Below, in pieces: positions 14,973 to 61,457 of a stretch of 64,000 nucleotides of DNA. Numbering within the stretch: the stretch's first letter is position 1; each line of letters opens with the position of its first letter. A program made the position numbers and the translations under genes. The DNA lies in IMG/VR virus record IMGVR_UViG_3300025012_000026, positions 124,001-188,000 of that record. One strand, given 5' to 3'. A model generated the notes under the pieces. It made no database searches and was not told the DNA's origin. It saw only the letters and a list, made by a program, of their open reading frames with translations.

Positions 14973-15065
14973 CAAATATTATTTATTACTTTTAACAAAA
15001 CATAAATCGCATAAAATTCCACTTCTATTGGATGCAATATATAACATAATTATTTATGCCTATTT

Positions 15066-15146
15066 AAATGACCATAAACCCTTATGTAGCAACAGTTACA
15101 GGACTATTTTACTGATTTTATTGAAAATTTGAGTTTATGGTCATTT
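15066..15146. repeat. non-coding element copy 1 with terminal inverted repeat
   Basis: AAATGACCATAAAC (15066-79) / GTTTATGGTCATTT (15133-46); shares AAACCCTTATGTAGCAA and TTGA.AATTTGAG with copy 2. Confidence 0.65.
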
Positions 15147-15189
15147 TAAGCATAACCCCATAAAATGAAAATTTCTTGAGTAATACAAT

Positions 15190-15480
15190 TTACATTACAA
15201 ATTGACTTAATTTATCCCTTAACTCCAAATGTGAATTAATCTTTGCTTCTGCGTCCTCTTTAACTTGCTTATGACTCAATAATTCTTGCTCTAATGCTTC
15301 GATCTTTGCTTGACTTTGTTCTTTTGATTGAGCCAACATCTCATTTGCCTGATCTATTTTAGCAACTGCAATTTTAAATGCGGTTACTGCATTATCTACA
15401 ATACCTACTGCATTGTCAATCATCATGGAAGGGGTTACTGCACTCTTTTTAAACATTTTCATTCTTATTCCTTCTTTCAT
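15190..15480 (-). CDS. coiled-coil hypothetical protein
   Basis: heptad-rich 96-aa ORF. Confidence 0.6.
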   Translation of the reverse strand: MKEGIRMKMFKKSAVTPSMMIDNAVGIVDNAVTAFKIAVAKIDQANEMLAQSKEQSQAKIEALEQELLSHKQVKEDAEAKINSHLELRDKLSQFVM

Positions 15481-16352
15481 TATTAATTTTACATATAAGT
15501 TGACACAAGCAAATATGTTCTCATTCTTCTTTGTTTAAAACTATAATCTGCAACATATTGACCATAACGTACAAAGCAAAATTCTTCAAAAGTATAGATA
15601 TCCATATCGCAACGAGAAAAATCTAAATATAATTTGTCTAATATTTCGTCTGGATAATTAATTTTAAATTTCTGTAACATTTGTTTTCTCCTTTAAATTA
15701 TTATTAACTCCTCTCTACTACTTGAAATAAAACACCACAATCTGCTTTATGTAACCAATATAACTCATCCCTATTCAAATTAACTTGAATACGATAATGC
15801 AATGTAGTTTCTTCCATAATCACTCGATACGTATCTTTCTTGAAGAAATTAAAATCTTTAAGGAATTTTACTTTTTGCATTATATCAACCTCCTTAATTA
15901 TTTTCAATAGTTAAAGTTGATTCAATAATTAACCATTCTTTACTTTTGAGTTTTTCTTCAAGAAAATCAAATGTATATAAATCACTAGACCATGTATAAC
16001 CTTGACCTAAATCAGTTAAGAAGAAAAAGTTACCGTCTTTATTTTCCTTTTTTGTAACTAATCTAAAGTCTTTATAACTAACTGAAATTATAAAAGGCAT
16101 CTTTGGCAATTCAAAGTTCTTTTTCTCATTAATTACTATATTCATATCAACCTTCCTCTCCTTCCATAATTAATTCTTGTAGTGCAATAAAAGCAACATT
16201 ATTAACCAATGGCCCACCTTGACATTCATACTCACAAAACTCTAATTGTTTAATTGCTTTTGCTGGATTATTTTTAAATTCATCAATCATTTTACGTGAT
16301 GTTGATTCCATATGTATTCACCTCTTTAGATATTTAAAATAACTGTTTTAAA

Positions 16353-16706
16353 TTATTTTATCAAAGATTCAATAGTTCTCTCTAATCCTAATTCTTGTCT
16401 ACAATAATGTAAGAAATCTTTACTATTCATTAAACTTTGAAGTTCATTTAATGAGTAATTTTTGGTAGATGAATAACATACTACTTCTTTTGTAACATTT
16501 CTCCCTTCTGATTGCCAAAGACTTAATTCGCAATTATCAACCGCATATCTACTATTAAATAATTCGATTGCTTCTTCTTTAGATTCTGCGAATATTGGAG
16601 TAACCCATCTATATGAATGATCTTTTTCTTTGAATCTATATTTAAAGAAATATAATTTATACAGGTCATATGTAAACTTAACTGCAATAGTATAGACTTT
16701 TCCCAT
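16353..16706 (-). CDS. hypothetical protein
   Basis: ORF with GGAGGTG RBS. Confidence 0.65.
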   Translation of the reverse strand: MGKVYTIAVKFTYDLYKLYFFKYRFKEKDHSYRWVTPIFAESKEEAIELFNSRYAVDNCELSLWQSEGRNVTKEVVCYSSTKNYSLNELQSLMNSKDFLHYCRQELGLERTIESLIK

Positions 16707-16996
16707 AATTCACCTCCAATATAGAATAAAACTAAACTTTGAACTAATTAATATTCATCATCACTTTCTTCTGGTTCTTCTAATTCCATTCCAATAATAT
16801 TTCCGATAGAATATAACGCCCATGCCTCTCCATTGCTACAACCATCATTAAATACATCATTGCTGTTTCCTTCTGATCTAAGTTCTGTGTAACCACAACA
16901 ATATGCTTTATAATGTCCATTTATGTATTCTTTAATTTCTTCAAGTATTTCTAAACTATCATTCATGAATTAATGCCTCCTATTTATTTCATACTT

Positions 16997-18328: not shown

Positions 18329-18376
18329 AATTCCTCCTTTCTAAGCACATGAAAATATCCTTTTATTGGATTATTT

Positions 18377-19316: not shown

Positions 19317-19369
19317 TTAGTTTACCTCCTATTATTTCTTCTGCTCATATAAAACGGACATTTCGTTTA

Positions 19370-19774
19370 CTAATCAATCTTATCCACAGTAATTGGAATC
19401 CACATCTTAGGATTATAATTCAATGTGTATTTATATTTATCAACATTTTTACTTCTTAATTGTTCAACAACATAGGTTACATTGTCTGATAAACCAATAA
19501 AGTGTTTTTGATAACCACCATTCTCATCTTCTACTGTTACTTCAAGTTGATTATCTTCTCTATCAGCATTAATTGATATTCTTCCTGTCATCTGAAATAA
19601 TACATCACCTGTGATACAATCAATTACCGTAAGTTGACGTACAACATTAAAATTATCAGCTTCTAATGATAAATTGTAAGATACTTTTTCTGCTTGGGTT
19701 TGACCACAACCAGTAAGTGTAACTGATAACAAAACTGTACATAATGCAGTTGCAAATATTTTTTTATTTTTCAT
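19370..19774 (-). CDS. lipoprotein
   Basis: basic N-terminus, hydrophobic core and lipobox LTGC. Confidence 0.75.
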   Translation of the reverse strand: MKNKKIFATALCTVLLSVTLTGCGQTQAEKVSYNLSLEADNFNVVRQLTVIDCITGDVLFQMTGRISINADREDNQLEVTVEDENGGYQKHFIGLSDNVTYVVEQLRSKNVDKYKYTLNYNPKMWIPITVDKID

Positions 19775-22791: not shown

Positions 22792-23630
22792 TATTATTTA
22801 CCTCCTTAAATTTTACTTACAGGATAAAATGGAATTTTCGAGGGAAGTTATTTTTGTCTTTTGAGTTTAAGCATTTCTACTAAAACAGTTTTTAATTCTC
22901 TTTCTTCTCCCATTATAGATGCTTTAATAAGACGTTTATGTAAATCTAAATTATTTAATAAAAATTCTTCATCTTCTTTAGACACACCATCTTTAGATAT
23001 TTCTGCAATCATTGTTTCCCTTAATAGTTCAAAATCTAATTTATCATCTTCATCTAGTGGAATATCTCCTACAATTTCTATTATACATTCATCGTATATT
23101 TTAACTAATTCGTCTTGATATTTCATTTATTTACCTCCCTTTAAACCATACAACCTATCATTCAACTCATCGCTCCACTTAATCATAAGTTCATAATCTA
23201 CTTCTTCAAAAATACTTCTTTCGTACAATGCTCTGCATAAATCTTGAACTCTTTTAAATTCATAAATGTCTTTTGGCATAACTCCTAATGGTGGTTTAGG
23301 TTTTTGAATGTGATTATATGTATCAAATCCAGTAAATTCTATACTTGTTTTTGACTCTACTTGTTGTACCATGCCATAATTATTCTTACTAACATATTTA
23401 TATCCAATAGAGTCATAACTATTGTCCCAACAATTTACTTTTACTAAACTTTCTCCAGAACTCCATTCTAATCCTTGGTCATAACAATATTTTAAAAATT
23501 CATTTGCAAGATTCTCAGTTTCACAACTTACATAAAATTCGCCATCCATAAATTTATCCCAGTGTTTTCAATAGTAAATATTTCCATATTAATTCCTTCT
23601 TTCATTTAATTTATCGTTCGTCCCATAAAT

Positions 23631-24356
23631 CTAATTTTTCGTGCTATTCAACCAATCACAATACTTTTTGCATTCTTCTTTAATTATAAATCCAATTTTT
23701 GTATTATACTCTTTTTCTTCATGTAATAGCTTAATATCTTCGTTAAATTCATTTACTATCTGACAAAGTTTAAATTCATTATAACTATAATCATCTCTAT
23801 AACTAGATTCTTTTGATGGGATATAAGTTTTTGATATATAAAATTTTCTTTCTGATTGATATCGACTATCTCTTTTATTAAATTTAATTAGAGATAACTC
23901 TGATGCCTCTGGGACAAATTTATGTATCAAATTGCTACAATCACAGTTTGTTTCTGTTGTTTTACCATTTGGAAAATTGGCAACTAATTTACGTTTACCA
24001 TTGCATAGAGAACACTTATCTTGACGGAACCCTTTGCTATCAGCGAACCATACTTCTGATTTTTCTATGTAATCTTTTAAAGTATCACCTATGTTGCTTT
24101 CATAAAATTCTTTTTCGACTTCTCTTTTAAGATTATCTGTTTTATACTTTAAATCTCTTTCTTTATTGTTTATTTCTGATTCTCTTTTACTATATTCATT
24201 ATTTTTCTGTTTGAGTTCAAGATTTTCTTTATTGAGTCTTTCAATTTCTTCACGAATATTTGGCAATAAATGCTCTCTACATTTATCTCTAAATTCCTCA
24301 ACTAATTGATCTACCTCACTTGGTTCATAATAATTTTCATATTCATCGTAATCCAT
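23631..24356 (-). CDS. hypothetical coiled-coil protein with CxxC...CxC motif
   Basis: 241-aa ORF with AGGAGAG RBS. Confidence 0.7.
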   Translation of the reverse strand: MDYDEYENYYEPSEVDQLVEEFRDKCREHLLPNIREEIERLNKENLELKQKNNEYSKRESEINNKERDLKYKTDNLKREVEKEFYESNIGDTLKDYIEKSEVWFADSKGFRQDKCSLCNGKRKLVANFPNGKTTETNCDCSNLIHKFVPEASELSLIKFNKRDSRYQSERKFYISKTYIPSKESSYRDDYSYNEFKLCQIVNEFNEDIKLLHEEKEYNTKIGFIIKEECKKYCDWLNSTKN

Positions 24357-24837
24357 TTATTAAATCTCTCCTTCTTATTTTAAATTCCGTTCAAATCGAC
24401 TTTCTATTCTAAAACAAATTCATTATAATTTTTATGCCACAAAGTACATAATTCTTCACAATTATTTTTATTACAATCTTTACAAGTCATTGAACTTACT
24501 TCATCGCACTTTAACATATCGTTCATAGACGCTTGTGCAATTTCTACGGTTAATTTATACTCTTTTGCCAATTCTTTAACAATTGGATCGTTTATTGAAT
24601 AACCTTTCATAACGTACATCCTCCTTCCTAAAGTCTATGAAAGAAATCTTTGTTTGGATTATTATTATTTTTACACTAACGAACTATGCAAAATTAATCA
24701 TGAGGCATGGGTCTCTCACCCACACGGATAACTGTTGTAGCCTGAAAAAGTTCCAAAAAATCATCTACAACCGCATTTACACTGTTAAAATTCCAGTTAT
24801 GCTTTTTTAATTATCTTTTCATTACTCACCAATCTTT

Positions 24838-24910
24838 TCACAATTAATGGATTTGAACCATCGATCTTCCCTGACTATGGGGATGCATTTTCCGACTATG
24901 CTATACTGTG
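24838..24910 (-). tRNA. tRNA-like element / pseudo-tRNA with aberrant anticodon loop (nominal AGT, Thr)
   Basis: cloverleaf: acceptor CACAGTA/AATTGTG; D-arm GCAT-AGTCGGAAA-ATGC; anticodon arm TCCCC-ATAGTCA-GGGAA; T-arm GATGG-TTCAAAT-CCATT; no encoded CCA. Confidence 0.65.
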
Positions 24911-24956
24911 AATTTATTTATTGTAACGACATCTTGCTCTGCCACCCATTACAATC

Positions 24957-24985
24957 ATTATACACTGCTTGATTGTTAATGTCAA
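24957..24985 (-). promoter_or_regulatory. consensus sigma-A promoter driving the tRNA-like RNA
   Basis: TTGACA-ttaacaatcaagcagtg-TATAAT (17-bp spacer). Confidence 0.8.
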
Positions 24986-24996
24986 CAATTATTATT

Positions 24997-25884
24997 TTAT
25001 AATTGTGAAGTATTAAGAGATAATAAATATTTTTGGATATCTTGTTCTAAATCTTTCCTTTTGTTCCCTTGTGCAAGTATATGTATTAATTTATATTGTT
25101 TGTCCATACTCCATAATTCATGATGATACGTTTTTCCATCTTCATTTTTCTTTCTTAGGATTCTATATAGAGGATTTTCTTCTATGTATAATTTATAATC
25201 TTCTTTTAACCATTTATTAAACTTATCTAACCGTTCCTGAGAAAATACTGGGTTATCATGAGTATACCATTCTTCTATAGTAGAAGAATGTTTAGAACTA
25301 TTACAACTATTACAAGATGGTATACAATTGTCTAACCCATTAGATCCTTTATCATCTGCATGTTCTCTATGTAAATCATGAGGTCTCACTATCCCACGAT
25401 ATTTTTTAAAATGTTTTTCAATTGAAAGTCCACAGAAAGCACAACAATTGTTGAAATAGTTCTTGCACAACCTCCATTCTTTTTCACTAATATAATGCAT
25501 CTTTTCTTTTCGTTTCTCGGTATATATCTTTGATTTTTCTTTTCCCACTTCGCTTTTCAACCATTCTGCATGTTTACCTTTTAATCTTCTTATTTTAGAA
25601 TGTTTTTTAGTACATTCTTTATCTTTTTTGTTTGTGTGATATGTGTTTTTTCTTTTTACTCTTCGTACTTCCTTGTCTGTATTAAAATATCTTTTCTGTA
25701 CATCTTTAATATTACATAATTTACATCTGGAACTTAAATTATCACTACTTTGATTCCATTCATAGAAATTATCTAAATTCATGGGAAACCACTGTTCGCA
25801 TTTAGTACATTGTTTATATTCAATTTCATCAATCATTTTATGACGCTTATTATAATTAAATTGATTTCTTTCTTCTCTTGTCAA
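24997..25884 (-). CDS. HNH endonuclease with N-terminal Zn-finger
   Basis: CxxC...CxxC; CAFCG...HREH...N...NCIPSCNSCNSSK. Confidence 0.85.
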   Translation of the reverse strand: MTREERNQFNYNKRHKMIDEIEYKQCTKCEQWFPMNLDNFYEWNQSSDNLSSRCKLCNIKDVQKRYFNTDKEVRRVKRKNTYHTNKKDKECTKKHSKIRRLKGKHAEWLKSEVGKEKSKIYTEKRKEKMHYISEKEWRLCKNYFNNCCAFCGLSIEKHFKKYRGIVRPHDLHREHADDKGSNGLDNCIPSCNSCNSSKHSSTIEEWYTHDNPVFSQERLDKFNKWLKEDYKLYIEENPLYRILRKKNEDGKTYHHELWSMDKQYKLIHILAQGNKRKDLEQDIQKYLLSLNTSQL

Positions 25885-25923
25885 TTATAAATACTCCTTT
25901 TAATTTCCTATCATATTTGGATT

Positions 25924-26241
25924 CTAAGCTATTTTAATTGCATCATAATATCTATATATTATTCTTTCAAATATTGCTCTATTATGATCTATACAATCCC
26001 CTCCGAAGCATTCAATGAATTCTGAGCGTAAAAGAGTAATGATCTCATCTCTAGTGTAGTATTTTGAGTTGATGTAATATTCTTGTGTATCTTTTGCAAT
26101 TCTGCTCAATTCATGAGTGTATACCTCTTTGTAGGGGATGTCACATTCATCTTTTTCATTGCCAAAAATAGATATGATATGACTTTCTATTACATCCAAT
26201 AATACTAGTTTGCTCTTCATATTTAATATCATTCCTTTCAA
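25924..26241 (-). CDS. hypothetical protein, paralog of 26943-27200
   Basis: shared YYI.SK..T..EI.TLLR.EFI..F..DCI.H...IFERII..YY. Confidence 0.7.
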   Translation of the reverse strand: MKGMILNMKSKLVLLDVIESHIISIFGNEKDECDIPYKEVYTHELSRIAKDTQEYYINSKYYTRDEIITLLRSEFIECFGGDCIDHNRAIFERIIYRYYDAIKIA

Positions 26242-47168: not shown

Positions 47169-47186
47169 TTATTTCACTCCTTCTTT

Positions 47187-50087: not shown

Positions 50088-50226
50088 TTACATTATCCCA
50101 CTTTGTCCATCCAATTGCAAAACAAAAATTATATGCATATAACCATTCTTTCGACAAAATAATTTTAAATTAGATTTAATTATTTTTATACTCTCATGTA
50201 TTTTAAGTTTAGACTGATATAATTGG

Positions 50227-50258
50227 GTCTACAGTCCCATCACTTAGGGACTGTAGAC
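50227..50258. terminator. stem-loop overlapping the yopR-like stop codon
   Basis: GTCTACAGTCCC-atcactta-GGGACTGTAGAC. Confidence 0.65.
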
Positions 50259-51250: not shown

Positions 51251-52605
51251 TATGATACCTCCTTCTGAAGTTGATAAACAACATCTTTAAAATAATCAGA
51301 AATCTTTTTAAATGTAGATAAATTTACATGATTTTCGATTCCAATTTTTTTCCAAATTTTATTTGATTTATCGAAATCTAAAGAGTTTAATACTTTTACT
51401 AATCTAGGTTTCCAGTCATCACCATATTCTTGTCTTAATAAATCTCCTAAAATAATATACCCCATAAACATGTTGTTATGTGCAAGATATGAATTTTCTT
51501 TGGTATTAGATAATTCTGTTTTAAACTTTGAATAATTGAGTCCAATAATATTATTGAACAACTCTACAATATCATTTTCAACTTGTGCGGTTCTAATAAC
51601 TGGCTCCTCTTTAAGATCATAAAGAAATTCAATGGATTTTGATAAAGTATCAAATGTCATTAATTTGTTTTCAATAATCAATTCCTTTTCATTTAAGGCT
51701 ATACGATTAAACATTTCGTTTGCCCTTTGTCTAGAATTAATAGCTTTTGCTACTTCCATATTTGGATTGGCTGTATTTTTAAAATCAACCCATTCAGTTT
51801 CAATTTGTGTACTTTTACTTTCTTGTCGAATTATTTCATTGGCACGCTCTTCTGTAACGTGGTGAATATAAATTGATGTAACCCTATCTATGTCATTCTT
51901 AATTTCAACAGTTTTTAACATGCCACAGGTTCTATTTGCACCATCAATTATGTCTACTAACGTAGACGCATTATCTGGTTCAATTAATAACGTTCTAGTT
52001 TTAAGATCATACTTAAACTTTTCTTGTCCATTTATTTTGCGAATGTTCCACATAATAGCATTAGTGCAAAAAGAACCATCTATCATTGACTCTGTAATTT
52101 CTGATACCTTTTTGCTGTCAATATTAATAGATTCAACAATTCTGTTTCCACTTCGTCTTTTTAAAAGTTGTCTTTGAGTATTTGGATTATATGTTAATAG
52201 TCCATTACCCATATAAAGATTAATATTTTGATAAGTTTCCTTTGTACATAACCATTGACTATCATCTATTTGATCGACATTATGAAGTAAAATATACTTA
52301 ACTTTTTCTTTATCAAGTTTTTTGTAATAATCAGCAGAAGACAATTCAATCTCTGTAAAGAACTCATCTGGATTTATTTCTGTTCGGTGAGTGTATCCAT
52401 AAAGATATTTTGTAAATAAACATAGTTCAATTTCTTCAACATAAACCAAAGGAATTGCTTTAGTGAATATACCTGTAGTTCTGCCCCTCGGTATACCTCT
52501 TTCTAATAATTTGCCTATGACTTGCTCTTGAATTTGATTGTCATTTGAATAATCTTCAATGACTAAATTAAGAATATCCTCAAGAATTTGACGATCTTGT
52601 TTCAT
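51250..52605 (-). CDS. yopQ: SPbeta YopQ (SroE)-like DndB/DGQHR-family protein
   Basis: INP..FFTE.E, LL.YNPN.QR, DIIDGANR (DGQHR variant) and LDFDK.NK.W..IG blocks; about 451 aa; RBS places the start at MKQDRQ. Confidence 0.8.
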   Translation of the reverse strand: MKQDRQILEDILNLVIEDYSNDNQIQEQVIGKLLERGIPRGRTTGIFTKAIPLVYVEEIELCLFTKYLYGYTHRTEINPDEFFTEIELSSADYYKKLDKEKVKYILLHNVDQIDDSQWLCTKETYQNINLYMGNGLLTYNPNTQRQLLKRRSGNRIVESINIDSKKVSEITESMIDGSFCTNAIMWNIRKINGQEKFKYDLKTRTLLIEPDNASTLVDIIDGANRTCGMLKTVEIKNDIDRVTSIYIHHVTEERANEIIRQESKSTQIETEWVDFKNTANPNMEVAKAINSRQRANEMFNRIALNEKELIIENKLMTFDTLSKSIEFLYDLKEEPVIRTAQVENDIVELFNNIIGLNYSKFKTELSNTKENSYLAHNNMFMGYIILGDLLRQEYGDDWKPRLVKVLNSLDFDKSNKIWKKIGIENHVNLSTFKKISDYFKDVVYQLQKEVS

Positions 52606-52678
52606 AATATTTATTCCTCCTTTTGACATATCAGCAACAAGTTATGTTGCTATGTATTGGTTAATAATACGCAATGCT

Positions 52679-52777
52679 ATTATAATATATAATATGCCAA
52701 TACGTCAAGAAGAATGCCTGATTAGTTTTATTATTTATGATTATATCATTATAACATTATTGATTGCATAATGTCAA
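52679..52777 (-). promoter_or_regulatory. two tandem sigma-A promoters upstream of yopQ-yopR
   Basis: TTGACA(52772-77)-18-TATAAT(52748-53) and TTGACG(52703-08)-18-TATAAT(52679-84). Confidence 0.6.
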
Positions 52778-52816
52778 ATAATTTATTTTATACACTTGAT
52801 TATCATATCTCTCACC

Positions 52817-53638
52817 TTAATTAATCATATTCTCATAATCTTGATTCCCAACATTTTCACAAACCATTTGTGCTGTTTTTTCTTTGCATAAATAATGATT
52901 AATTACCATTAGTAACCATGTTAAAAATATTACTGGAATAGATGTTATTATAACAATAGCAATTAGTTCATCAATAAATTGTAATTTAATTATAATGCTA
53001 TTGTTTTCTACTAATTTGTTCATATAATTTACCACTAGAACTCTAGTTGACAATACTAACAACAAACCACTAATAATAAATTTATTTCTGATAACCGAAC
53101 TAAATAGATTAATTTTTACTTTGCTGTTTTTTCTAACTAGAATTAAGGAAACAATACATAGATGCAAAATTTTGATTGGAATGGCCCATAAGATATTGTA
53201 CATGACATTATCATTAAAAAAACTATATGGCTTATCTAATAACGATAATAGAAGTGGACAGTATGCGTATTCTATTATTCCTACAATGACGAAGCTTCCG
53301 ACTGTATAGATTGCTGTTTTAAATATTAATGATATGTTTATGTCAAAACTGTTTGTGATGACTATGTATTCCATTAAGATTATCATTAGAAACATAATTG
53401 ATAATATAGAATTTTGTTTTGGTACTATGATAATATACTTGAAGATATTTGCCATTATTGCTACTGGTAATGCTGTGAGCATAATCCATGTTAGACTACG
53501 TTTCCACATTAAAATATCTAGTAGATCATTAATTTTTAAAAGTGATAATGCGATGATTACAATGAACATTTGTTCAGGGAGGCCAACAAATATGGTGTTT
53601 AGGATGGCATTTGTTATGGATTGCATATGGGTGTTCAC
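52817..53638 (-). CDS. polytopic membrane protein B, AgrC-sensor-like without kinase domain
   Basis: about 7 TM segments; MQ.ITNAILN....LPE..F motif shared with 55463-56272; directly downstream of agrB; no H-box or GHKL domain. Confidence 0.7.
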   Translation of the reverse strand: MNTHMQSITNAILNTIFVGLPEQMFIVIIALSLLKINDLLDILMWKRSLTWIMLTALPVAIMANIFKYIIIVPKQNSILSIMFLMIILMEYIVITNSFDINISLIFKTAIYTVGSFVIVGIIEYAYCPLLLSLLDKPYSFFNDNVMYNILWAIPIKILHLCIVSLILVRKNSKVKINLFSSVIRNKFIISGLLLVLSTRVLVVNYMNKLVENNSIIIKLQFIDELIAIVIITSIPVIFLTWLLMVINHYLCKEKTAQMVCENVGNQDYENMIN

Positions 53639-53644
53639 TCCTTT

Positions 53645-54277
53645 TTATTTTATTTTTGAATCTAGCGCAGAATAAACAATTTGCCCTATTCTGCTTATAC
53701 TAAATAATTCTAATAATAATCCAAAACAACTTGAAATTACAATAATCTTTAGATTGAAAAGTAGGGAGATGGTCATTATGATTGTCCATATAAATAGATA
53801 ATATGATGACCATCTTTTGAATTTTTTGATTTCTAATGGCTCTGTGATTGGTTTATTTGGTGTATCTCTAGGTACATAACGATAAATTATATACATTGTC
53901 ATTACAACACAGAAATTGAATAAATACCACATGTCTATAAATGACCAATATTGGAGTGTATATTTGATTAATAATGCTGATCCAATGAACTGAATGGTTG
54001 AAAAAGTTATACATTTATTATATTCCCCGAAATGGTATCCACCTGCTATGATACGTAAACTACTGAAGGTCAAGGCGATTATTAGGGTAGGAAGCTTTAT
54101 GCTAAAAATAGATGCTAAAGATACCATTAACATAGCCTTAAAAATAGCACCCCAAACTACCATGAAACCATATGTGAAAACCTCAATCTGATCTTCTACG
54201 GTAGGATATTTATCATTAGGTACTTTTTTTGCTAACCACTTAGCAGAATGATTTGATACAAATTCTATAAAACTCAT
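53645..54277 (-). CDS. agrB: AgrB autoinducing-peptide processing membrane cysteine protease
   Basis: E...YG; LRIIAGGYH......C (conserved Arg/His/Cys); P.DTPNKPI; about 210 aa, multi-TM. Confidence 0.92.
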   Translation of the reverse strand: MSFIEFVSNHSAKWLAKKVPNDKYPTVEDQIEVFTYGFMVVWGAIFKAMLMVSLASIFSIKLPTLIIALTFSSLRIIAGGYHFGEYNKCITFSTIQFIGSALLIKYTLQYWSFIDMWYLFNFCVVMTMYIIYRYVPRDTPNKPITEPLEIKKFKRWSSYYLFIWTIIMTISLLFNLKIIVISSCFGLLLELFSISRIGQIVYSALDSKIK

Positions 54278-54304
54278 TAAATTATTTAATCTTCCTTTCT
54301 TTTA

Positions 54305-55129
54305 TCATGCATAAGCCACCTGTTGCCCTACACTAGTATAATTATTTTCTTGTATATTCTGTCTGATTGGTTTAACTTTATTTAGATTTTTCAAAGTCTC
54401 TATTGCTTCCTCTTCGTTTACATGTAATTCTAAAATACCCTCAGATTTCATAAGGGCAATTTCAACTTTCAACATTATATTTGAAGGACATTCAGCGACT
54501 TTTTGAAATACTCCATTCTTTCCTATTAATCTTCTTTTTGATATTGTGTTTGGTAATTCACAACATATAATAGAGTCCTGTGGGATATTACATTCTTTAC
54601 TGCTTGCGAAAACGTGAGTCGGCATCTTAGCTTTGGATCTAGTTGTCATCGCTATGACAATAGAGTTGCTAGAGCAAGCATTCCCCTTATTATTTTGCAC
54701 CACAAGCACCATTCTTGGGCCGCCTACTTCACTATCTATCCCTTTGTCACCAAAGTCTGCGAAACAAAAATCTCCTCTTCTGACACGAATATTTTTTATT
54801 TGCTCTAAATCATTATTTGCATATAAAGAGTATCCACATGCTATTTTTAGATCCTGCAACGAAACCCTACCTTCTGAATTATTTGCGAAAACATTGAGGG
54901 TTTGAACGTTCGGATAAACATTTATTTTTTCACGAACGATAAGTTCTATGTACCCTCCTTCAATTTTGCAGTCTGCTCCAAAATTATTGATTGTCCTATG
55001 GGTTCCTTTAGCAAGCATAATTAAACTAGCTAGTTTCTTAAAATCCTTTTTGGCATTTACCTCAGTGTTGGTGGTATTAGTTGATTTGGCAAATAATTTG
55101 TTGAACATAATAATGCACATCCTTTTCAT
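54305..55129 (-). CDS. XRE-type HTH - MazF/PemK endoribonuclease fusion
   Basis: N-term L..AKG..RTIN.F...C.I...YI......P....L..FA....G.VS...L..ACGY (XRE HTH); C-term RRGD..FAD.G....SE.GG.R..LVVQN..GN..S....IAMTT...K.PTH...DS.I.CE...TISK.RL (MazF); probable start MFNKLF at 55108. Confidence 0.85.
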   Translation of the reverse strand: MKRMCIIMFNKLFAKSTNTTNTEVNAKKDFKKLASLIMLAKGTHRTINNFGADCKIEGGYIELIVREKINVYPNVQTLNVFANNSEGRVSLQDLKIACGYSLYANNDLEQIKNIRVRRGDFCFADFGDKGIDSEVGGPRMVLVVQNNKGNACSSNSIVIAMTTRSKAKMPTHVFASSKECNIPQDSIICCELPNTISKRRLIGKNGVFQKVAECPSNIMLKVEIALMKSEGILELHVNEEEAIETLKNLNKVKPIRQNIQENNYTSVGQQVAYA

Positions 55130-55132
55130 ATT

Positions 55133-55201
55133 TAATAAGATATAAAATAATTTTCTTTAACTGATAGTATAATTATATCTTATTATGTATGGATATGTCA
55201 A
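55133..55201 (-). promoter_or_regulatory. promoter of the HTH-mazF/agrB/sensor-B operon with overlapping inverted repeat (candidate operator)
   Basis: TTGACA(55196-201)-18-TATAAT; 13-bp perfect IR TAATAAGATATAA (55133-45) / TTATATCTTATTA (55173-85). Confidence 0.7.
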
Positions 55202-55240
55202 CATAATTATTTTCAATTGTCTATTAATTTATATTATGGT

Positions 55241-55270
55241 TATAGGAGAGAACCGAAGTCCTCTCCTATA
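55241..55270 (-). terminator. UUCG-tetraloop stem-loop after agrD
   Basis: minus strand TATAGGAGAGGAC-TTCG-GTTCTCTCCTATA; no poly-U tail. Confidence 0.65.
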
Positions 55271-55287
55271 TGTAAAAGTGATTAAAA

Positions 55288-55407
55288 TTATTTATTTAGA
55301 CATTTAGGATCTTTTGGTTGATAAGAAAACGCCCAAGAAGCCATATTTGATGTAAATAGTGCTAACATAGATACTAATCCAGCAAGAACAATATATACTT
55401 TCTTCAT
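55288..55407 (-). CDS. agrD: AgrD cyclic (thio)lactone autoinducer propeptide, 39 aa, missing from the ORF track
   Basis: MKKVYIVLAGLVSMLALFTSNMA-SWAFS-YQPKDPKCLNK; RBS AAAGGAGGTG; amphipathic leader and clostridial (H/Y)QPxxPxxL tail. Confidence 0.9.
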   Translation of the reverse strand: MKKVYIVLAGLVSMLALFTSNMASWAFSYQPKDPKCLNK

Positions 55408-55462
55408 GTTAATGTCACCTCCTTTCCAAGAATTTATTTATATAACAAATGCCTTAATCATC

Positions 55463-56272
55463 TTAATCAATAAGATTTTCTTGCGTTTGCTGTATACGTT
55501 TTTCTATACCGACTACACAATTTATCATATACCACAACACCATAAGAAATATAGTTGGTAGACTTAGAATGAATCCTATTGATAATATTTGTTCCCAAAT
55601 TGGCAATGTGCTTAAGATATTATTATATCCTATCAATTTCACAACATAAATTGTAAATAGTGTTAAGAAAGATATTATAAAAATTATCATATTGGTTAAT
55701 GGTTTATTTTTGAACACTAAATTGTACAATTTGATATTTACTTGTTCATTCATCTTAACTATAAAAAATATTATTATTGAGAATTCTAAAATTCTAGAAG
55801 GAATTACTAGTAAAAACATATAAGAAATATTTTGATTAAAATATTCATAAGGAATTTTTAACAATGAAAACGTTAGTGGCATATAAGCTAATTCAATTAA
55901 ACTGACTATTATTAGAGTAATCATTGAGTAAACTATGGTTTTAAATATTAGTTTATTTTCTTGAGTTATTTCAGTAATTCTTATTATGTAAATAATCGCC
56001 AACCAAAATATTATTAATGAGATTATTGATGTTAATAATTTAGGCAAAATTATAATATACTTAAAAATACTTATACACATTGCCATCAGCAATGAAGGTA
56101 TTATAATCCACTTAATATTTATTCTCCACATTCTTATGTCAAGTAAATCAAATCTTTTGAACAATATTAATGTCATACATGTTACAAATATTTCTTCAGG
56201 TAAGGATATAAGAACCATGTTCAATAAAGCATTTGTTACACCTTGCATATGTATTACCTCTTTCTTATTCAT
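55463..56272 (-). CDS. polytopic membrane protein A, AgrC-sensor-like without kinase domain
   Basis: about 7 TM segments; paralog of 52817-53638; directly upstream of agrD; probable start MQGVTN at 56248. Confidence 0.7.
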   Translation of the reverse strand: MNKKEVIHMQGVTNALLNMVLISLPEEIFVTCMTLILFKRFDLLDIRMWRINIKWIIIPSLLMAMCISIFKYIIILPKLLTSIISLIIFWLAIIYIIRITEITQENKLIFKTIVYSMITLIIVSLIELAYMPLTFSLLKIPYEYFNQNISYMFLLVIPSRILEFSIIIFFIVKMNEQVNIKLYNLVFKNKPLTNMIIFIISFLTLFTIYVVKLIGYNNILSTLPIWEQILSIGFILSLPTIFLMVLWYMINCVVGIEKRIQQTQENLID

Positions 56273-56288
56273 TTCTTAACCTGTAATA

Positions 56289-56317
56289 AGTATACCATAA
56301 GACAAGGTGTAACGCAA
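56289..56317 (-). promoter_or_regulatory. promoter of sensor-A/agrD
   Basis: TTGCGT-17-TATACT with TG extended -10. Confidence 0.55.
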
Positions 56318-56329
56318 GTATTATTTTAT

Positions 56330-56941
56330 TTATTGATTCATATATACCTTATTAATTTCTTTGACTGAACAGTAAACTATTATAAAAGCAAATATTCTTA
56401 TTAAAATATCACCAATACTCCAAATTGACATACCAAATATATCAAATATATCGGACAAAAATATTAGATTTGTCATATGATCACCTAAAACATGAAAATC
56501 ATTAAACTTAGAAGCATTCATAATCATATCATACTGAGTGTAACCAGTTGAATAAGATACATCTGGGAAAATAGGCATCATCCCATGATTAAAGTACATT
56601 ACAATATAATTCAATACAAATCCACACAAGAGACTACAACAAGCGATAATATACTCTTTATACTTCTCATGCCTAAATAGAACATCAAGTCCTAGAATCA
56701 TATATGATCCTAATATAGCATTCTTTATTATGTGTTGATATTGAAGAAAGTAGTAATTTTGATTCATTATTGTATATTGTAGATAGATGTAAAATATAGA
56801 CATTAATATAACTGGATAGATACTCCATCTTTTTAGTATTGGTTTTATATTGTATGATTCTTTATGTATTTGGAATTTTCCTAGTTTTATGTAAAGATAT
56901 ATTTTAGAGAATATGAGCGATGCTATTAGTGTCTCGACCAT
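56330..56941 (-). CDS. DUF5317-family membrane protein
   Basis: LNYIVM..NHGMMPI...H......T.L.FLSDI.......SIGDI pattern; multi-TM. Confidence 0.7.
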   Translation of the reverse strand: MVETLIASLIFSKIYLYIKLGKFQIHKESYNIKPILKRWSIYPVILMSIFYIYLQYTIMNQNYYFLQYQHIIKNAILGSYMILGLDVLFRHEKYKEYIIACCSLLCGFVLNYIVMYFNHGMMPIFPDVSYSTGYTQYDMIMNASKFNDFHVLGDHMTNLIFLSDIFDIFGMSIWSIGDILIRIFAFIIVYCSVKEINKVYMNQ

Positions 56942-57001
56942 TTATTGTATTATCTCCTTTGTATTATTTTGTAATAATTTATTTATTTACAATCATGTAT
57001 T

Positions 57002-58738
57002 CTACGGAGGTTTATTATTTTGATCTTTAATCATATTCTCATAATCTACTAAATACATCCATTTAAGTAATTCACCAGTCTCAAGATCTTTACCACATGT
57101 TTTTTGTTTATTTTTGCAACATCTTCCAATTCCGACACGATTTATATTATATTCTTTTGATGCGTTTGCAATAGAATTGAATACTTTGTTTGTTGTCAAA
57201 CATATTATCTTCATATCTCTTGAACTATGTAGTATATACTTTATTTCTTGTTTATCTTTAAAAATATATTCTTCGTAATACATCCAAACCATCTTTTCCC
57301 CTGTTTCGGGATGTTTTCCTGCCGATTTTTGTATACCTAAACAACATGATGAAATATCACTATTCCTTATATTATACTTACTTGTTGCATCAGTTATAGA
57401 ATTAAAAATTTCATTAGTTGTTAAACAAACAACTTTTGTTTGCATTACTTCTTTAGTATCATAATCACACCACCCCAATTCTACACCTTGTTTTAAATAT
57501 CTAGAAACTGTAGAGGTATGAACCTTTATTATATCTGCTATTTCTACAGTCCTTTTAATTCCACTATTCCATAAATTACATGAAATTTTAACTAAACTTG
57601 AACATCCAGCCTCATGACACTTCAACCAATCTATATCTTTTTCTTTAAAATTAAGTAATATGGGCAATCTAGACCTCATTATGCTATTCTTTATCCACTC
57701 TAACTCAGACTTTCTACAATCGATTATTATGTAATTATTAATATTGTTTGTTCTCGCTAACCACTCTTTATCAAAATCATTTTCCTGAACTTCTGCTAAT
57801 GAAACTTTCCAATTACCTGTTATTTCTTCATAATGCTGAATTCCTTGAATTTCAATGACAATTTTATCTAATTTTTCTATGTAAAAATCATATCTGTATC
57901 CACCACACCATTTAAAAGTTATTTTACTCAATTGAGATTTAAAATTTAGATGTAATTGTTCTAAAAAAGATAGAAAGAACTTCTCTGGATAACTCACACC
58001 ATCGGAACATCTAGGGCAAGCAAATCCATGTACTACTAAGGTGCTAAAATTTAAATTTTTATCATATCCACAATCTGGACATTTCATAGGTATTTTTGGA
58101 TTTGATCCAAAAGAATGTTTATTTGCATCTTCTTTATTTACCAAATACTTAATTAAATGTGGATGAGTTGTCACAACCATATTACACATATTGCAATCAA
58201 GACTTCCATTTTGTCCATTTGTAAAACTACTAATACTTTTTAATTCACTTTCATGTTCTGGATGTTCTAAACACTTAAACCAATAACCTTTTTTATTAAA
58301 ACCTGCGGAACTAAAGCTTACATCATTAGGGCTTAATACTTTCCCATTTTTTATATTTTTTGCATCATCCCATCTAGATAATATCCAATCTGCCAATTCT
58401 TTAGGGAGATTATCGTAACACCATTGATAAAAAGATTTACTATTTTTTAATTTTGTAATTCTTCCATTTTCACTCACAAACAGTTTTATGGCACATTTTA
58501 TACAATAATATTTTTCACCCTCATGTCTTAAATCTATATAATGTCGCCATATGACATTTTTTATAATTTCTCCGCAACCATCACACTGAATATCGACTAA
58601 TGCGTGTGAACTATGAGGTAAATCCTCTACTTTCACTTCGAATTCATTGCCCATTTTTGTAAAGATATAATCTCTTTGTTCATAATATTTTTTAATACTT
58701 GCATTCCATTTCATTTTTACGGTTTTAGTTATTAACAA
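57002..58738 (-). CDS. homing-endonuclease-like protein (Zn-ribbons + DUF559/Vsr-like nuclease + NUMOD1 repeats)
   Basis: several CxxC ribbons; S.PE...YDFYI...IEIQGIQHY; C-terminal KVVCLTT..F.SI..A repeats and KSAGKHP.TGE..W shared with 34290-35495. Confidence 0.8.
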   Translation of the reverse strand: MLITKTVKMKWNASIKKYYEQRDYIFTKMGNEFEVKVEDLPHSSHALVDIQCDGCGEIIKNVIWRHYIDLRHEGEKYYCIKCAIKLFVSENGRITKLKNSKSFYQWCYDNLPKELADWILSRWDDAKNIKNGKVLSPNDVSFSSAGFNKKGYWFKCLEHPEHESELKSISSFTNGQNGSLDCNMCNMVVTTHPHLIKYLVNKEDANKHSFGSNPKIPMKCPDCGYDKNLNFSTLVVHGFACPRCSDGVSYPEKFFLSFLEQLHLNFKSQLSKITFKWCGGYRYDFYIEKLDKIVIEIQGIQHYEEITGNWKVSLAEVQENDFDKEWLARTNNINNYIIIDCRKSELEWIKNSIMRSRLPILLNFKEKDIDWLKCHEAGCSSLVKISCNLWNSGIKRTVEIADIIKVHTSTVSRYLKQGVELGWCDYDTKEVMQTKVVCLTTNEIFNSITDATSKYNIRNSDISSCCLGIQKSAGKHPETGEKMVWMYYEEYIFKDKQEIKYILHSSRDMKIICLTTNKVFNSIANASKEYNINRVGIGRCCKNKQKTCGKDLETGELLKWMYLVDYENMIKDQNNKPP

Positions 58739-58805
58739 TTAGCAACACCTTTTTGCCAATTGTTAATAACTTTATATTTTTCAATAAACATCCTTCTCCT
58801 TTTAT

Positions 58806-59228
58806 TTATGCATACACAATATTCTTATCTTTCTGACCTATTGAGAATTGAATAAGTATACCTTGATTTATACGTTCCATAGTTTCAGAATTACAATATC
58901 CAACTTTCTTCAAAAATATATCTTCATTTTTGTTAACTAACATAACTTGTTCACAGAGAGCAATAGAATCTCTTAATAGTCCTGAAGAGTTTTTATTTAT
59001 GCTTTTGTGAGTTGGTAATTTTGACTTCGTGCCGATAGAACTAATTGGACATATATGCACAACTGGACTGTAGCGATTTGCCATATTATTACTTACAATT
59101 ATGCATGGACGCAATTTTCCTTGGATAGATCCCTTGCCTTCTCCTAGATCAACTAACCATATCTCTCCTCGATTAAATTGTTGTGGTTGTTGAACATTAT
59201 TTATTACATTTTGCATAATAATTATCAC
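58806..59228 (-). CDS. mazF: MazF/PemK (NdoA-like) endoribonuclease with no adjacent antitoxin
   Basis: RGEIWLVDLG...GS.QG..RPCIIVSN...NRYSP....PISS...KLPTH...GL.RDS.AL.EQ. Confidence 0.9.
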   Translation of the reverse strand: MIIIMQNVINNVQQPQQFNRGEIWLVDLGEGKGSIQGKLRPCIIVSNNMANRYSPVVHICPISSIGTKSKLPTHKSINKNSSGLLRDSIALCEQVMLVNKNEDIFLKKVGYCNSETMERINQGILIQFSIGQKDKNIVYA

Positions 59229-59340
59229 TCCTTCTTATTTAACCTTGTGATAATTATTATTCCCCACAGCTTGGATAATATACGTTGTCCAACAAAACTT
59301 TTATTTCTACATTCTAATCACCCCCTTACATTCTAATACT

Positions 59341-59611
59341 TTACCACCATAAACTAGGCAAACACAATGCAAATATATTAACTATATCTTCTACTTTTTC
59401 TTTCTGCTCGTCAGTCCTTTTCATTGTACATAGATAATCTTTCATATAACCATAGTTTAAATGTGAAGTCCATTGACCAAGTTTCTTTTTCATCAAAACC
59501 ATATATTTCTCTTTCTTTAATCCATCGTTCTTGCCTTGAATCATCTTTATTCCAACCTTGAGGAGTATTGTCTTCTAATATACCAAGGTCTTTAAGATAT
59601 TTACCTAACAT
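59341..59611 (-). pseudogene. probable internally deleted or frameshifted phage gene
   Basis: N-part ...GFDEKETWSMD..F..WLYERL.MY.E ends at 59411; a plausible C-terminus (...FALCLPSLWW) lies in another frame ending at 59341. Confidence 0.45.
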
Positions 59612-60318
59612 TTATTTTCCTCCTCTAACCCCTTAAATGCCATAATAGCAACCTCTAATTGTTCCACACTTGGTTCCTTTGTGAAAATATATTTCTGCAA
59701 TAAACTTCCTACAAAATAAATTGGCTTAACAAACCACTTAATAATCCTATTATCAGATCTCATTACTTCATATGTAATTCCCCATCCTAATAACATTGCT
59801 CCAGAATGAACTAATGAAACTAATAATCCACTAATTATAATTAATCCAATATACAAATTAGTTCCACAATTATCATTTACACAACTTTGATTCATTGATG
59901 TTTCAATCGACACTTTACCATTTATTTCGTAATCATTTACCACTTTATGTTCTGCTCCATGATAATATTTCGTTTTACTACATTTATTAAATAACAACAT
60001 AAAAATAGGCAATATAATGAAATTATGATAGTTACTGTTTTGTAGACTGCTTGGTTCAAAATTGTATAGACCATAAGAATAAATAAGACTTAGTGCCAAT
60101 AATAACAAACCAAATTTTGTAAAAATTAATTTTAATATAATCCAATATGCTCTAGCAAAAGGTATTCTGTAAAGAAAATTCTCTAAAATATTTTGCTTAT
60201 CATCTTTGAGTATTTTATTTACAATAATATTATTGCCTTTTCTTATTGCTGTTGAAGTATGAGTTTCTGATTCAAACATTACATTATTGTATCCTGCTCT
60301 ACCACCTAGTAAATTCAT
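59605..60318 (-). CDS. DUF1385 (YqhQ-like) membrane metal-binding protein
   Basis: GGRA....VMF, IPF.R, YHGAEHKV, CGTN and LQKY..TKEP...QLEVA motifs. Confidence 0.85.
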   Translation of the reverse strand: MNLLGGRAGYNNVMFESETHTSTAIRKGNNIIVNKILKDDKQNILENFLYRIPFARAYWIILKLIFTKFGLLLLALSLIYSYGLYNFEPSSLQNSNYHNFIILPIFMLLFNKCSKTKYYHGAEHKVVNDYEINGKVSIETSMNQSCVNDNCGTNLYIGLIIISGLLVSLVHSGAMLLGWGITYEVMRSDNRIIKWFVKPIYFVGSLLQKYIFTKEPSVEQLEVAIMAFKGLEEENKC

Positions 60319-60832
60319 ATTCTATCCACCTCAAATCCCCTTAATATCATTCGGAATCCCAAATTCCCACTTATCACAACCTACAACCGGATAAATCTTA
60401 ATTATAAACCCATGTTGTACATTCATTTGCTCTCCTACTCTGCAATATTGTAATCTCCCATCTCTCATTCTAGCATTTTTACAAGTCAAACAAGTTTTAT
60501 TTATCACATTATAATCACAAACTTTTTCATGGATTTCCATTTCTTCTTTTGGGAGTAACATAGTACAGAAATCACATTTGAATATTGGTTTCATATTTAA
60601 TCACTCTCCTTTCTTTAATACAACAAGACAAAAGACTTGTTCTAAACCAACAACTTCTTTAATTCATGTTCAAAATAAAATGTTGCAGGATTTTCAATTA
60701 TAGTATAAGTATATCTAGCTTGTTTCAGTGTATAACCCCATTCATTTACCGTGACAATTTTACCATCTAATAATACTTTTTCTCCATCTTGAAATTTTGG
60801 ATTAAATTCATTAATCAATTTAATTCTCCTTT

Positions 60833-61285
60833 CTACTCAAACATTTTAACAGTATTCTTAAATATCCCTGCCATATCACAAGAATAACCAAATCTATCAT
60901 GATTTTTATCAATATCAATAAGAATATTTCCATCATTGTGTCTTAATGACGATGCTTTCCAATCACAAACCATTTCAATTAAATCTACTAAATCCATATC
61001 TTTAATTCCATTAGGCCAATGTTGGGGGTGATGTCTATTTTTTGCATAATGATGATCTAATGCTTCTTTAAGTTCTTCAAGAGTCTTTTTATCTTCTTCG
61101 CTTCCATAGGTGCAACCAGCCAATTTTGAATTATGTTGAGCAAAAATATCTGCTTCAAAGTCCTCTAGTTTTGAATTATCATGATTGATTGCTCTTTCAC
61201 CTAATTTCTGGATAACTTTATTCATAAACTTATTGACCAATTGCTTATGTTTGTATGTGTCACACATTGTTTCATATTTTGTCAT
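60833..61285 (-). CDS. HD-like protein (DUF5662-type)
   Basis: H...V...RA..HDNSKL...HHY..NRHHP.H...DL.EM.CDW. Confidence 0.7.
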   Translation of the reverse strand: MTKYETMCDTYKHKQLVNKFMNKVIQKLGERAINHDNSKLEDFEADIFAQHNSKLAGCTYGSEEDKKTLEELKEALDHHYAKNRHHPQHWPNGIKDMDLVDLIEMVCDWKASSLRHNDGNILIDIDKNHDRFGYSCDMAGIFKNTVKMFE

Positions 61286-61457
61286 TATTTATTTTCCTCC
61301 CAATGCACAAGCAAAAAATATTCCAATCCACATTATGAAAAACCAAGCAACAGGACTTTGAGGTAAAATATTAATCGTAATATGCTTTGCTTCTTTATTA
61401 TTCTCACACATAATTAAACACTCCTATTCCGATCAAACTATTCTTTGAATTGATAAC

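Follow-up and report, generated by a model that had tools for sequence, protein, structure and literature searches.

A dispersed 28-bp dyad element upstream of early genes in a large groundwater phage and in SPbeta-like phages

This report concerns a 28-bp dyad-symmetric element that recurs in the gaps between the genes of an uncultured groundwater phage, and in particular the copies found in a 64,000-nt stretch of its DNA (the window; bases 124001–188000 of the 227,247-bp virus record IMGVR_UViG_3300025012_000026, G+C 28%). The sites are genuine copies of one dyad-symmetric motif, beyond chance AT-richness. The element is common to this 227-kb phage, SPbeta, the tyroviruses of the Bacillus cereus/B. 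anthracis group, and Clostridium botulinum phage c-st. It apparently has not been described previously; a full-text search of the literature, including review and genome papers, yielded no description of it. As the best explanation we tentatively propose that the copies form a family-wide, stoperator-like array of operators for a putative phage DNA-binding protein, which would gate early transcription; from the analysis presented here we regard this as quite possible, though short of probable.

The dyad element and its placement

Genes on the plus strand of the phage occupy positions 1–88 kb of the genome and make up the structural arm, which includes a YonO-type RNA polymerase. Genes on the minus strand occupy positions 108–227 kb; this is the early/accessory arm, the arm in which sigma-A-type promoters are visible, and the entire window lies inside it. 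An initial annotation of the window had listed 20 imperfect palindromes with a variable 6-bp spacer, and each of the 20 strings is present exactly as listed. A de novo search was performed with our own expectation-maximization (EM) motif program on intergenic DNA of the minus-strand domain, from which the 14 nt immediately 5′ of every start codon, where the ribosome-binding site (RBS) lies, had been stripped. The top motif was the 28-bp dyad ATCCnATaAAA-N6-TTTtATnGGAT (11 + 6 + 11 columns), in which the 6-bp spacer is free in sequence. Its log-likelihood was 197.8, compared with 93–112 for 12 dinucleotide-shuffled sets. The resulting position weight matrix (PWM; scores in bits) recovered 19 of the 20 listed sites at 9.6 bits or more, the exception being the site at 23625, and it bore out both the 11-6-11 geometry and the outer TCC...GGA extension that had been described for the palindromes. 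It also added 11 sites, bringing the total to 30 copies in the window and approximately 50 in the phage.

The enrichment was examined with the core WTNAAA-N6-TTTNAW. In intergenic DNA of the early arm this core occurred 19 times, compared with 2.9 ± 1.6 in shuffled DNA (z = 10). The excess was largest at a spacer length (k) of 6, as proposed. A smaller one was seen at k = 7 (12 copies, z = 5.5), where some of the matches were k = 6 sites displaced along an A/T run; all other spacers in this DNA gave counts at expectation. In intergenic DNA of the structural (plus-strand) arm the same core occurred once, with 3.1 copies expected. The intergenic set as a whole is not made up of chance AT-rich matches; the site at 23625 is not supported by the matrix. 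Over the whole window the core count was not above chance (13 vs. 10.2), and the signal lay in location: 11 of the 13 matches were intergenic, and the matches to 4- and 8-bp spacer controls in the window were nearly all within coding DNA. With a symmetrised matrix and a threshold of 10 bits, 47 of the 60 strong matches fell in the 19.7 kb of early-arm intergenic DNA and only three in the 99.6 kb of early-arm coding DNA; the structural arm contained five intergenic and five coding matches.

The element was found in 23 of 57 gaps of 36–70 nt (40%), whereas gaps of up to 35 nt rarely contained one (3 of 88). Its position between a stop codon and the next RBS, noted previously, was confirmed on the transcribed (minus) strand, and the center of the dyad is mostly 25–45 nt 5′ of the start codon. 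Also upheld was the absence of sites from the replication and Agr operons: none scored 9 or more in window positions 1–15005 or 46360–61426, the latter containing the MrpR/YopQ/AgrB/MazF module. The element is thus class-specific, being early-arm intergenic, nearly absent from the structural arm, and missing from the MrpR/Agr/MazF module.

The copies in the window are given here without strand, with the start of the previously listed palindrome and the PWM score in parentheses. The strongest are at 18344–18371 (18349; 25.0), 26872–26899 (26877; 24.0; near-consensus), 15006–15033 (15011; 23.1), 29285–29312 (29290; 22.3), and 61427–61454 (61432; 21.4). Intermediate scores were obtained at 42285–42312 (42290; 19.2), 24632–24659 (24637; 19.0), 28225–28252 (28230; 17.9), 22819–22846 (22824; 16.3), 46332–46359 (46337; 15.2), 35800–35827 (35805; 15.0), 36046–36073 (36051; 14.6), and 16721–16748 (16726; 14.1), and lower scores at 15155–15182 (15160; 11.6), 19344–19371 (19349; 11.4), 16329–16356 (16334; 10.7), 27223–27250 (27228; 10.2), and 24385–24412 (24390; 9.9), with a weak copy at 33658–33685 (33663; 9.6). 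The copies added by the matrix are at 28981–29008 (19.4), 43018–43045 (18.4), 28254–28281 (16.2), 33136–33163 (16.0), 30809–30836 (13.4), 41648–41675 (12.4), and 26232–26259 (12.1), together with weak copies at 23583–23610 (12.5), 26666–26693 (10.2), 45952–45979 (10.0), and 27717–27744 (9.7). For the copies beginning at 16329, 16721, 18344, and 35800, the center lies 32, 29, 30, and 25 nt, respectively, before the start codon. The adjoining copies at 28225–28252 and 28254–28281 form a back-to-back pair (28225–28281) with one base between them, upstream of the gene at 27736–28218.

The same element was found in other phages. The looser core WTNAAA-N6-TTTNAW, compared with its reversed control, gave 42 vs. 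5 matches in SPbeta, 45 vs. 6 in phi3T, 36 vs. 6 in Kirov, 49 vs. 6 in FADO, and 36 vs. 12 in Thrax5; the enrichment in c-st was less clear (57 vs. 27). When the spacer of the strict core ATNAAA-Nk-TTTNAT was varied from k = 3 to k = 10, the successive counts were 0, 1, 2, 25, 2, 1, 0, and 2 in Kirov; 7, 1, 5, 34, 2, 4, 2, and 6 in FADO; 4, 0, 3, 17, 3, 6, 3, and 3 in phi3T; 3, 1, 2, 14, 6, 3, 2, and 6 in SPbeta; and 7, 7, 9, 25, 8, 4, 8, and 8 in c-st. In all five phages the count peaked at k = 6 only. Intergenic DNA of SPbeta contained 17 copies at k = 6, compared with 2.0 ± 1.6, and the dyad element was the top motif of a de novo search there; in c-st the k = 6 peak was present, but other repeats dominated such a search. 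Among the control phages, SPO1 and SPP1 had no copies and phi105 had one; AR9 (251 kb and equally AT-rich) had 13 mixed matches, and phiC2 had seven.

Inner arms and spacer length are the same in the groundwater phage as in the tyroviruses and in the Bacillus phages SPbeta and phi3T. The outer arms are lineage-specific: ATCCn/nGGAT in the groundwater phage, TCTnn/nnAGA in SPbeta and phi3T, and TGG/CCA in FADO. In every lineage an RBS comes just after the element; the distance from the right arm to the RBS is approximately 2 nt in Kirov and FADO. One Kirov element (record positions 33760–33810) follows a terminator-like hairpin and overlaps the −35 region of an extended −10 sigma-A promoter, an arrangement that, judged by its sequence, looks operator-like and would fit an operator.

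The element as a putative operator

Three properties of the copies bear on whether the element is recognized as DNA or as RNA. First, the arms do not covary. Among 52 copies with 11-bp arms, 294 positions were complementary between the arms, compared with 306.6 ± 8.8 after the right arms were re-dealt among the copies; at the most variable inner position 18 of the 52 copies paired, with 18.4 expected. Copies from SPbeta, phi3T, Kirov, and FADO were likewise without covariation in the partner-shuffle test. Second, when 16 window copies were folded as RNA, only that at 26872–26899 formed the expected hairpin (−7.9 kcal/mol, z = −4.1); five had no structure at all, and the remainder had z values from −2 to +1.2. 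The strongest copy, 18344–18371, did not fold as the expected hairpin, and the fold of 22819–22846 had an energy of 0 kcal/mol. Third, there was no polarity: in sites picked with the symmetrised matrix and aligned along the direction of transcription, base frequencies at positions 3–13 from the center were equal in the two arms, and asymmetry appeared only beyond the arms, at the start of the purine-rich RBS. Because the arms match the consensus independently, most copies are unfolded, and the arms are statistically alike, the element reads as a protein site on double-stranded DNA rather than as a hairpin or a promoter. A hairpin of RNA or single-stranded DNA was rejected on the partner-shuffle tests in five genomes and the folding of the 16 copies, and the lack of polarity in a dyad argues against a promoter or an RNA signal. 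An Rfam scan at the gathering score left the element unmatched; its sole match in the window was a tRNA, a tRNA-Thr gene (anticodon AGU) at 24837–24911 on the minus strand, inside the long spacer 24611–24996.

Several known kinds of DNA site were considered and rejected. The element has no −35/−10 pair in the register of a sigma-A promoter, and consensus sigma-A promoters (TTGACA-N17-TATAAT) lie in long spacers near 17.6, 41.1, 52.7, and 55.2 kb. With the center 25–45 nt from the start codon, the transcription start would be at most approximately 12 nt from the center, and a −10 element would therefore fall in the unconserved spacer. A promoter for YonO was rejected because SPbeta YonO uses one late promoter (PMC5467207), whereas the elements lie in the early arm, and a class II activator site was rejected because the transcription start, approximately 41 nt downstream of the center, would fall beyond the RBS. 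As a site of the IHF/HU type the element would have A-tracts where the kinks of an IHF-DNA complex are found, and SPO1, which encodes the HU-like protein TF1, has no copies; yet HU-family genes occur in every one of the seven genomes that bear the element, so that this rejection is less firm.

In the explanation that we favor, a phage-encoded protein would bind the element as a dimer, or as two monomers on the inverted arms, and once bound would gate or block host RNA polymerase where it enters each early gene or small cluster of genes. The prophage could be silenced in this way, or early genes could be shut off late in infection. Dispersed repressor sites are already known in the SPbeta-like family, namely SPBRE and the SroF boxes (PMC10516654; bioRxiv 10.1101/2025.11.27.690993). 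Five considerations weigh against this explanation. A road-block ahead of almost every gene would be an unusual design. In Kirov and FADO the closeness of the right arm to the RBS is suggestive of a role in translation initiation instead of one on DNA. The stoperators of phage L5 are asymmetric and oriented, whereas the dyad elements are symmetric. The enrichment of mosaic breakpoints at elements, described below, could mean that recombination is the primary function. Finally, gene coordinates were taken from our own simple open reading frame (ORF) caller, so that gene starts, some intergenic assignments, and distances are approximate.

Candidate binding proteins in the groundwater phage are an MrpR-like protein, an HU-family protein (genome 9548–9823), and small helix-turn-helix proteins. 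The first is a homologue of MrpR/YopR/SroF, a family of repressors with a recombinase fold, encoded on the minus strand at window 50240–51250 (PF22822, 2e-17; PDB 9rd5, 3e-25; 8a0a, 4e-11). Homologues in SPbeta, phi3T, Kirov, and FADO could be detected for only six proteins of the groundwater phage; this protein is one of them and represents the sole sequence-specific DNA-binding family among the six. Two other SPbeta proteins were rejected as binders: YopQ, which is ParB-like, had no detectable homologue in Kirov or FADO, and YopP is absent from the groundwater phage and c-st.

The annotation had offered binding by MrpR as an alternative, and elements that are operators of the phage's own MrpR homologue would be a special case of the operator explanation. 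The homologue is indeed encoded, its recombinase fold would suit arms of approximately 11 bp, and phi3T SroF reads A-tracts, its box containing GAATAAAA, which resembles an arm of the element (bioRxiv 10.1101/2025.11.27.690993). The dyad motif, however, differs from the sites known for the family. In SPbeta, chromatin affinity purification sequencing (ChAP-seq) of MrpR gave ten peaks, all reported at promoter regions bearing SPBRE (PMC10516654). The form of SPBRE that we read from the regions upstream of aimR, yopM, yonT, yonX, yopV, and yonP, AAATACAAAWAATATGTAT, is unlike the dyad element, and at most 1 of the 42 SPbeta copies, that upstream of aimR, has such a box next to it. The target of SroF in phi3T is not a dyad but an asymmetric A-tract box of 26 bp, to which the protein binds as a monomer (bioRxiv 10.1101/2025.11.27.690993). 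Neither type of box is abundant in the groundwater phage. SPbeta and phi3T have different repressor boxes (approximately 14 and 25 loose matches) but the same element, with approximately 40 copies each and one consensus, and several boxes abut an element, 20–28 nt from its center. We therefore conclude from the sequences that box and dyad element are separate sites, sometimes side by side. Binding by MrpR is possible in the groundwater phage itself, though homology lends it no support, and overall we consider it unlikely that the elements are MrpR operators.

The boxes have some regularities of their own. The phi3T-type SroF box (core AGAATAAAAATAAAAT) occurs approximately 25 times in phi3T, for example at 105181, 107906, 121039, and 125066; several of these boxes begin exactly 20 nt from the center of an element, in the order element, box, RBS. 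By eye, SroF-like boxes also follow two SPbeta elements, for example at 113663 and 132746.

A quite unlikely alternative is that the element acts in mRNA, as a 5′ hairpin or AU-rich module by the RBS that insulates or stabilizes the message or tunes translation initiation, or as a processing site. Its constant place just 5′ of the RBS would suit such a role, as would its movement with the downstream gene (see below) and the ability of the consensus to pair, as at 26872–26899; a precedent exists in the start-associated sequences of Cluster K mycobacteriophages (PMC3203893). Against it are the lack of compensatory changes at variable arm positions in five genomes, the failure of 15 of 16 copies to form the hairpin, the instability of six A-U pairs closed by a hexaloop, the near-absence of the element from the highly expressed structural arm, and the lack of an Rfam match.

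Mosaic breakpoints and the remaining alternatives

Near-identical relatives of the phage were 100% identical to it and thus uninformative for comparison. The groundwater phage (G000) was compared with G001, a 45-kb IMG/VR contig that is a mosaic relative carrying the same element. G001 is strictly collinear with the window from 49477 down to −7998, in 24 blocks of 69–97% identity with unrelated or missing genes between them. Read at the level of bases, several of the replacements in G001 stop inside an element or at its edge. One of them takes the place of the gene at 41679–42257, between the elements 42285–42312 (upstream boundary) and 41648–41675 (downstream boundary). Homology to G001 begins inside 33136–33163 and in the right half of 36046–36073, and it ends at 27717–27744; the element 28981–29008 is conserved in G001. 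The element was kept with its downstream gene in five of six orthologous cases, including 28225–28252. At the back-to-back pair described above, G001 has the proximal element only, and the gene upstream of the element is missing.

The element-breakpoint association is real. Between G000 and G001, 9 of 46 break ends were within 16 nt of an element center, compared with 3.3 ± 1.7 expected from random intergenic placement (P = 0.004); between SPbeta and phi3T the corresponding number was 8 of 78 (expected 1.9 ± 1.4, P = 0.0005). The enrichment was thus 3- to 4-fold in both pairs. Counted by gaps, a break was present in 9 of 9 gaps with an element and 3 of 6 without for G000 and G001 (p = 0.044), and in 9 of 16 with and 11 of 48 without for SPbeta and phi3T (p = 0.027). 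The expectation that breaks in relatives would fall exactly at the sites was only partly realized. Breaks were enriched there, but their offsets from the element center were scattered from −20 to +16, with one inside the spacer (BLAST ends are fuzzy by a few bases), and 80–90% of break ends were away from elements. Gene swaps also occurred at element-less junctions of 2–23 nt. No permutation of gene order was seen, the shared genes being strictly collinear.

Contigs of four groundwater, soil, and sediment metagenomes were laid on window positions 24001–30000. They contained no element-to-element joints; they did contain variant joints, such as 24382 to 24591 and 27712 to 28607, belonging to related phages that diverge from the window at many points, which indicates that the natural population is mosaic.

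This pattern fits ordinary recombination at dispersed similar 28-mers better than exchange of the Xer or integron type. We propose that mosaic boundaries are enriched at elements because similar 28-mers favor crossover. As a by-product of the operator array, 28-mers dispersed at the 5′ edges of gene units would offer favored places for crossover when related phages recombine by ordinary, non-site-specific means. A comparable process, recombination mediated by promoter early stem-loop elements (PeSLs), has been proposed in T4-type phages (PMC2839356, PMC4122927). A bolder combination of the two roles seems to us unlikely: domesticated recombinase-fold proteins of large temperate Firmicute phages (SPbeta-like, tyroviruses, and c-st-like) would target the element, and the array would serve both to silence or gate early genes and to provide crossover points for single-gene exchange between co-infecting relatives. 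If true, such a dual-role array would amount to a regulatory-recombinational "gene socket" system in which each gene has its own control site, and it would be new for any phage.

It is distinctly improbable that the elements are core sites of an Xer-like tyrosine recombinase at which single-gene cassettes are excised, inserted, and swapped, as at pdif sites or in integrons. This was the annotation's principal suggestion, and its geometry and a statistical tie to gene gain and loss have held up, including several replacements bounded by elements on both sides. In addition, at least two recombinase-fold proteins are encoded by every element-bearing phage examined (for the tyroviruses, according to PMC9703825), and Kirov has a true 11-6-11 site beside an Xer-like gene, as described in the tyrovirus paper (PMC9703825); this "putative attP" has a different 11-6-11 sequence and is not a copy of the element. 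The mechanism itself, however, is unsupported. Besides the scattered breaks, the swaps without elements, the strict collinearity, and the lack of element-to-element joints in metagenomes, the arms are symmetric and lack XerC/XerD polarity, and the spacers differ among sites. In Xer and Cre systems unlike spacers block exchange between sites. Nor was a canonical tyrosine recombinase common to the compared element-bearing phages found. YopP is missing here and from c-st, and the sole canonical tyrosine recombinase (PF00589) of the groundwater phage, a 186-aa protein encoded at genome 206617–207177 on the minus strand, is absent from SPbeta and c-st. The Pfam catalytic domain extends over most of its length, catalytic-residue-like motifs can be seen by eye, and little room is left for a core-binding domain; its size recalls the FimB-type invertases.

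Very unlikely as well is an element without function, whether a selfish or passively spread short repeat, like repetitive extragenic palindromic (REP) sequences or miniature inverted-repeat transposable elements (MITEs), or a boundary kept as recombination there yields viable mosaics. Breakpoint enrichment and dispersed copies would be expected of either, but the inner arms and exact 6-bp spacing are kept across phages whose proteins are 22–37% identical, the copies hold a fixed place relative to the RBS and are excluded from the structural arm, and a repeat of 28 bp, with no transposase associated with it, is too short for a mobile element. Finally, it is highly unlikely that the element is a compact promoter for a phage polymerase or a factor-modified host RNA polymerase, with a −10-like TAAAAT in the left arm and the start in the right arm, for although TAAAAT is present in approximately 35–45% of half-sites in SPbeta, phi3T, Kirov, and FADO, siting before many small genes recalls the T4 early, middle, and late promoters and the HF2 repeats (PMC2839356, PMC8707807), and a sigma-70-family protein is encoded by the phage (genome 200440–200637, minus strand, 6 kb from the 186-aa recombinase), a dyad without polarity would fire both ways, in the groundwater phage AAAA is mostly followed by G and not by T, −35 and TG elements are missing, clear sigma-A promoters lie elsewhere, in long spacers, YonO has its single late promoter in SPbeta, and tyroviruses reportedly depend on host RNA polymerase (PMC9703825).

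The phage and comparison with known systems

Sequence identical to that of the phage is contained in several groundwater and soil metagenomes, and a megablast search of GenBank phages gave no match. The proteins identified in the window include a RecD2-like helicase, a PolIII-alpha-type polymerase, and an NAD-dependent ligase (39132–41093, named by its match to the c-st ligase), along with many small ORFs. A lysogeny-type module on the minus strand (50240–55129) encodes the MrpR/YopR/SroF homologue, a YopQ-like (DndB/ParB-like) protein, AgrB, and a 274-aa MazF/PemK-domain protein, and is served by the consensus sigma-A promoters near 52.7 and 55.2 kb. Because the gene order MazF, YopQ, YopR, ligase is the same as in c-st, the phage is placed, on its sequence, in the broad SPbeta/c-st group of large temperate Firmicute phages.

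Other features of the genome were noted. Six homing-endonuclease-type genes (HNH, GIY-YIG, NUMOD, and I-HmuI-like) are scattered over the early arm on the minus strand, at window 7768–8550, 9586–10251, 24997–25884, 34290–35555, 37948–39036, and 57002–58738. A repeat of approximately 110 bp lies beside the GIY-YIG gene (window ~34272–34382) and has an 80%-identical copy at the end of the structural arm (genome 86631–86734). The gene for the YonO-type single-chain RNA polymerase, with approximately 52% identity to SPbeta YonO, matches in two plus-strand pieces (genome 3310–4989 and 6052–6942) approximately 1 kb apart, a sequence arrangement that suggests an inserted element or intron; the YonO-type gene of phi3T is likewise in two pieces, with stops.

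SPbeta has been a model prophage of Bacillus subtilis for 50 years, and its control of lysis and lysogeny is under active study. Both SPbeta and phi3T are genetically tractable, so that the binder and the function of the element could be found directly. The answer would show how more than 100 kb of early genes are gated in the SPbeta-like family, and the association with mosaic boundaries is relevant to the shuffling of accessory genes in large temperate phages.

Among known systems, close parallels include the gp71 stoperators of L5 and other Cluster A mycobacteriophages, dozens of short sites that lie in intergenic gaps within lytic operons and not only at promoters (PMC9283540). Many copies in short gaps of the early arm were found here too, but stoperators are asymmetric sites of 13–14 bp that follow the direction of transcription and are recognized by an immunity repressor acting as a monomer (PMC9283540), whereas the elements are 28-bp dyads without a single orientation or polarity and with a putative binder. 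The SPBRE and SroF boxes come from the same phage family and are likewise AT-rich A-tract sites dispersed over the early region, often just 5′ of the RBS, and a repressor of that family is encoded by the phage; the boxes, however, have another sequence, are present in approximately 10–25 copies, and are asymmetric and bound by a monomer, and the element has no box-like asymmetric sequence. The start-associated sequence (SAS) and extended SAS of Cluster K phages also form a motif at gene starts, with an inverted-repeat part upstream of the RBS, but they have another sequence and occur in another phage group, and the SAS is asymmetric and includes the RBS itself (PMC3203893).

The PeSLs of T4-type phages are repeated intergenic motifs that flank small variable genes and at which insertions, deletions, and replacements break between relatives (PMC2839356, PMC4122927). 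Breakpoints were found at the dyad element as well, although they made up only 10–20% of break ends; PeSLs consist of an early sigma-70 promoter plus a terminator-like stem-loop and span several tens of bases, whereas the element lacks both a promoter and a stable stem.

Xer core sites, such as dif and the pdif sites of Acinetobacter plasmids, share with the element the 11-6-11 geometry and a variable 6-bp center. The consensus of a dif arm is TTATGTWAA, and no arm of this type was found in the dyad element, which also lacks distinct XerC and XerD arms, alternating orientation, and precise crossovers; its two arms are not unlike each other, and exchange was not confined to the central region. 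Integron attC sites keep their structure but not their sequence, fold as single-strand hairpins, and are placed at the 3′ end of the cassette, with an IntI integrase adjacent. The element does not resemble them, since its sequence is conserved without covariation and 15 of 16 copies are unfolded, and the layout is not that of integron cassettes, since the element stays with the downstream gene and the only integrase-like match is the small PF00589 protein, not an integron integrase. Dispersed intergenic control sites are thus already known in phages, as stoperators, SPBRE/SroF boxes, PeSLs, and SAS; what appears to be new here is a 28-bp dyad that has an Xer-like geometry and is conserved over distant groups of Firmicute phages.

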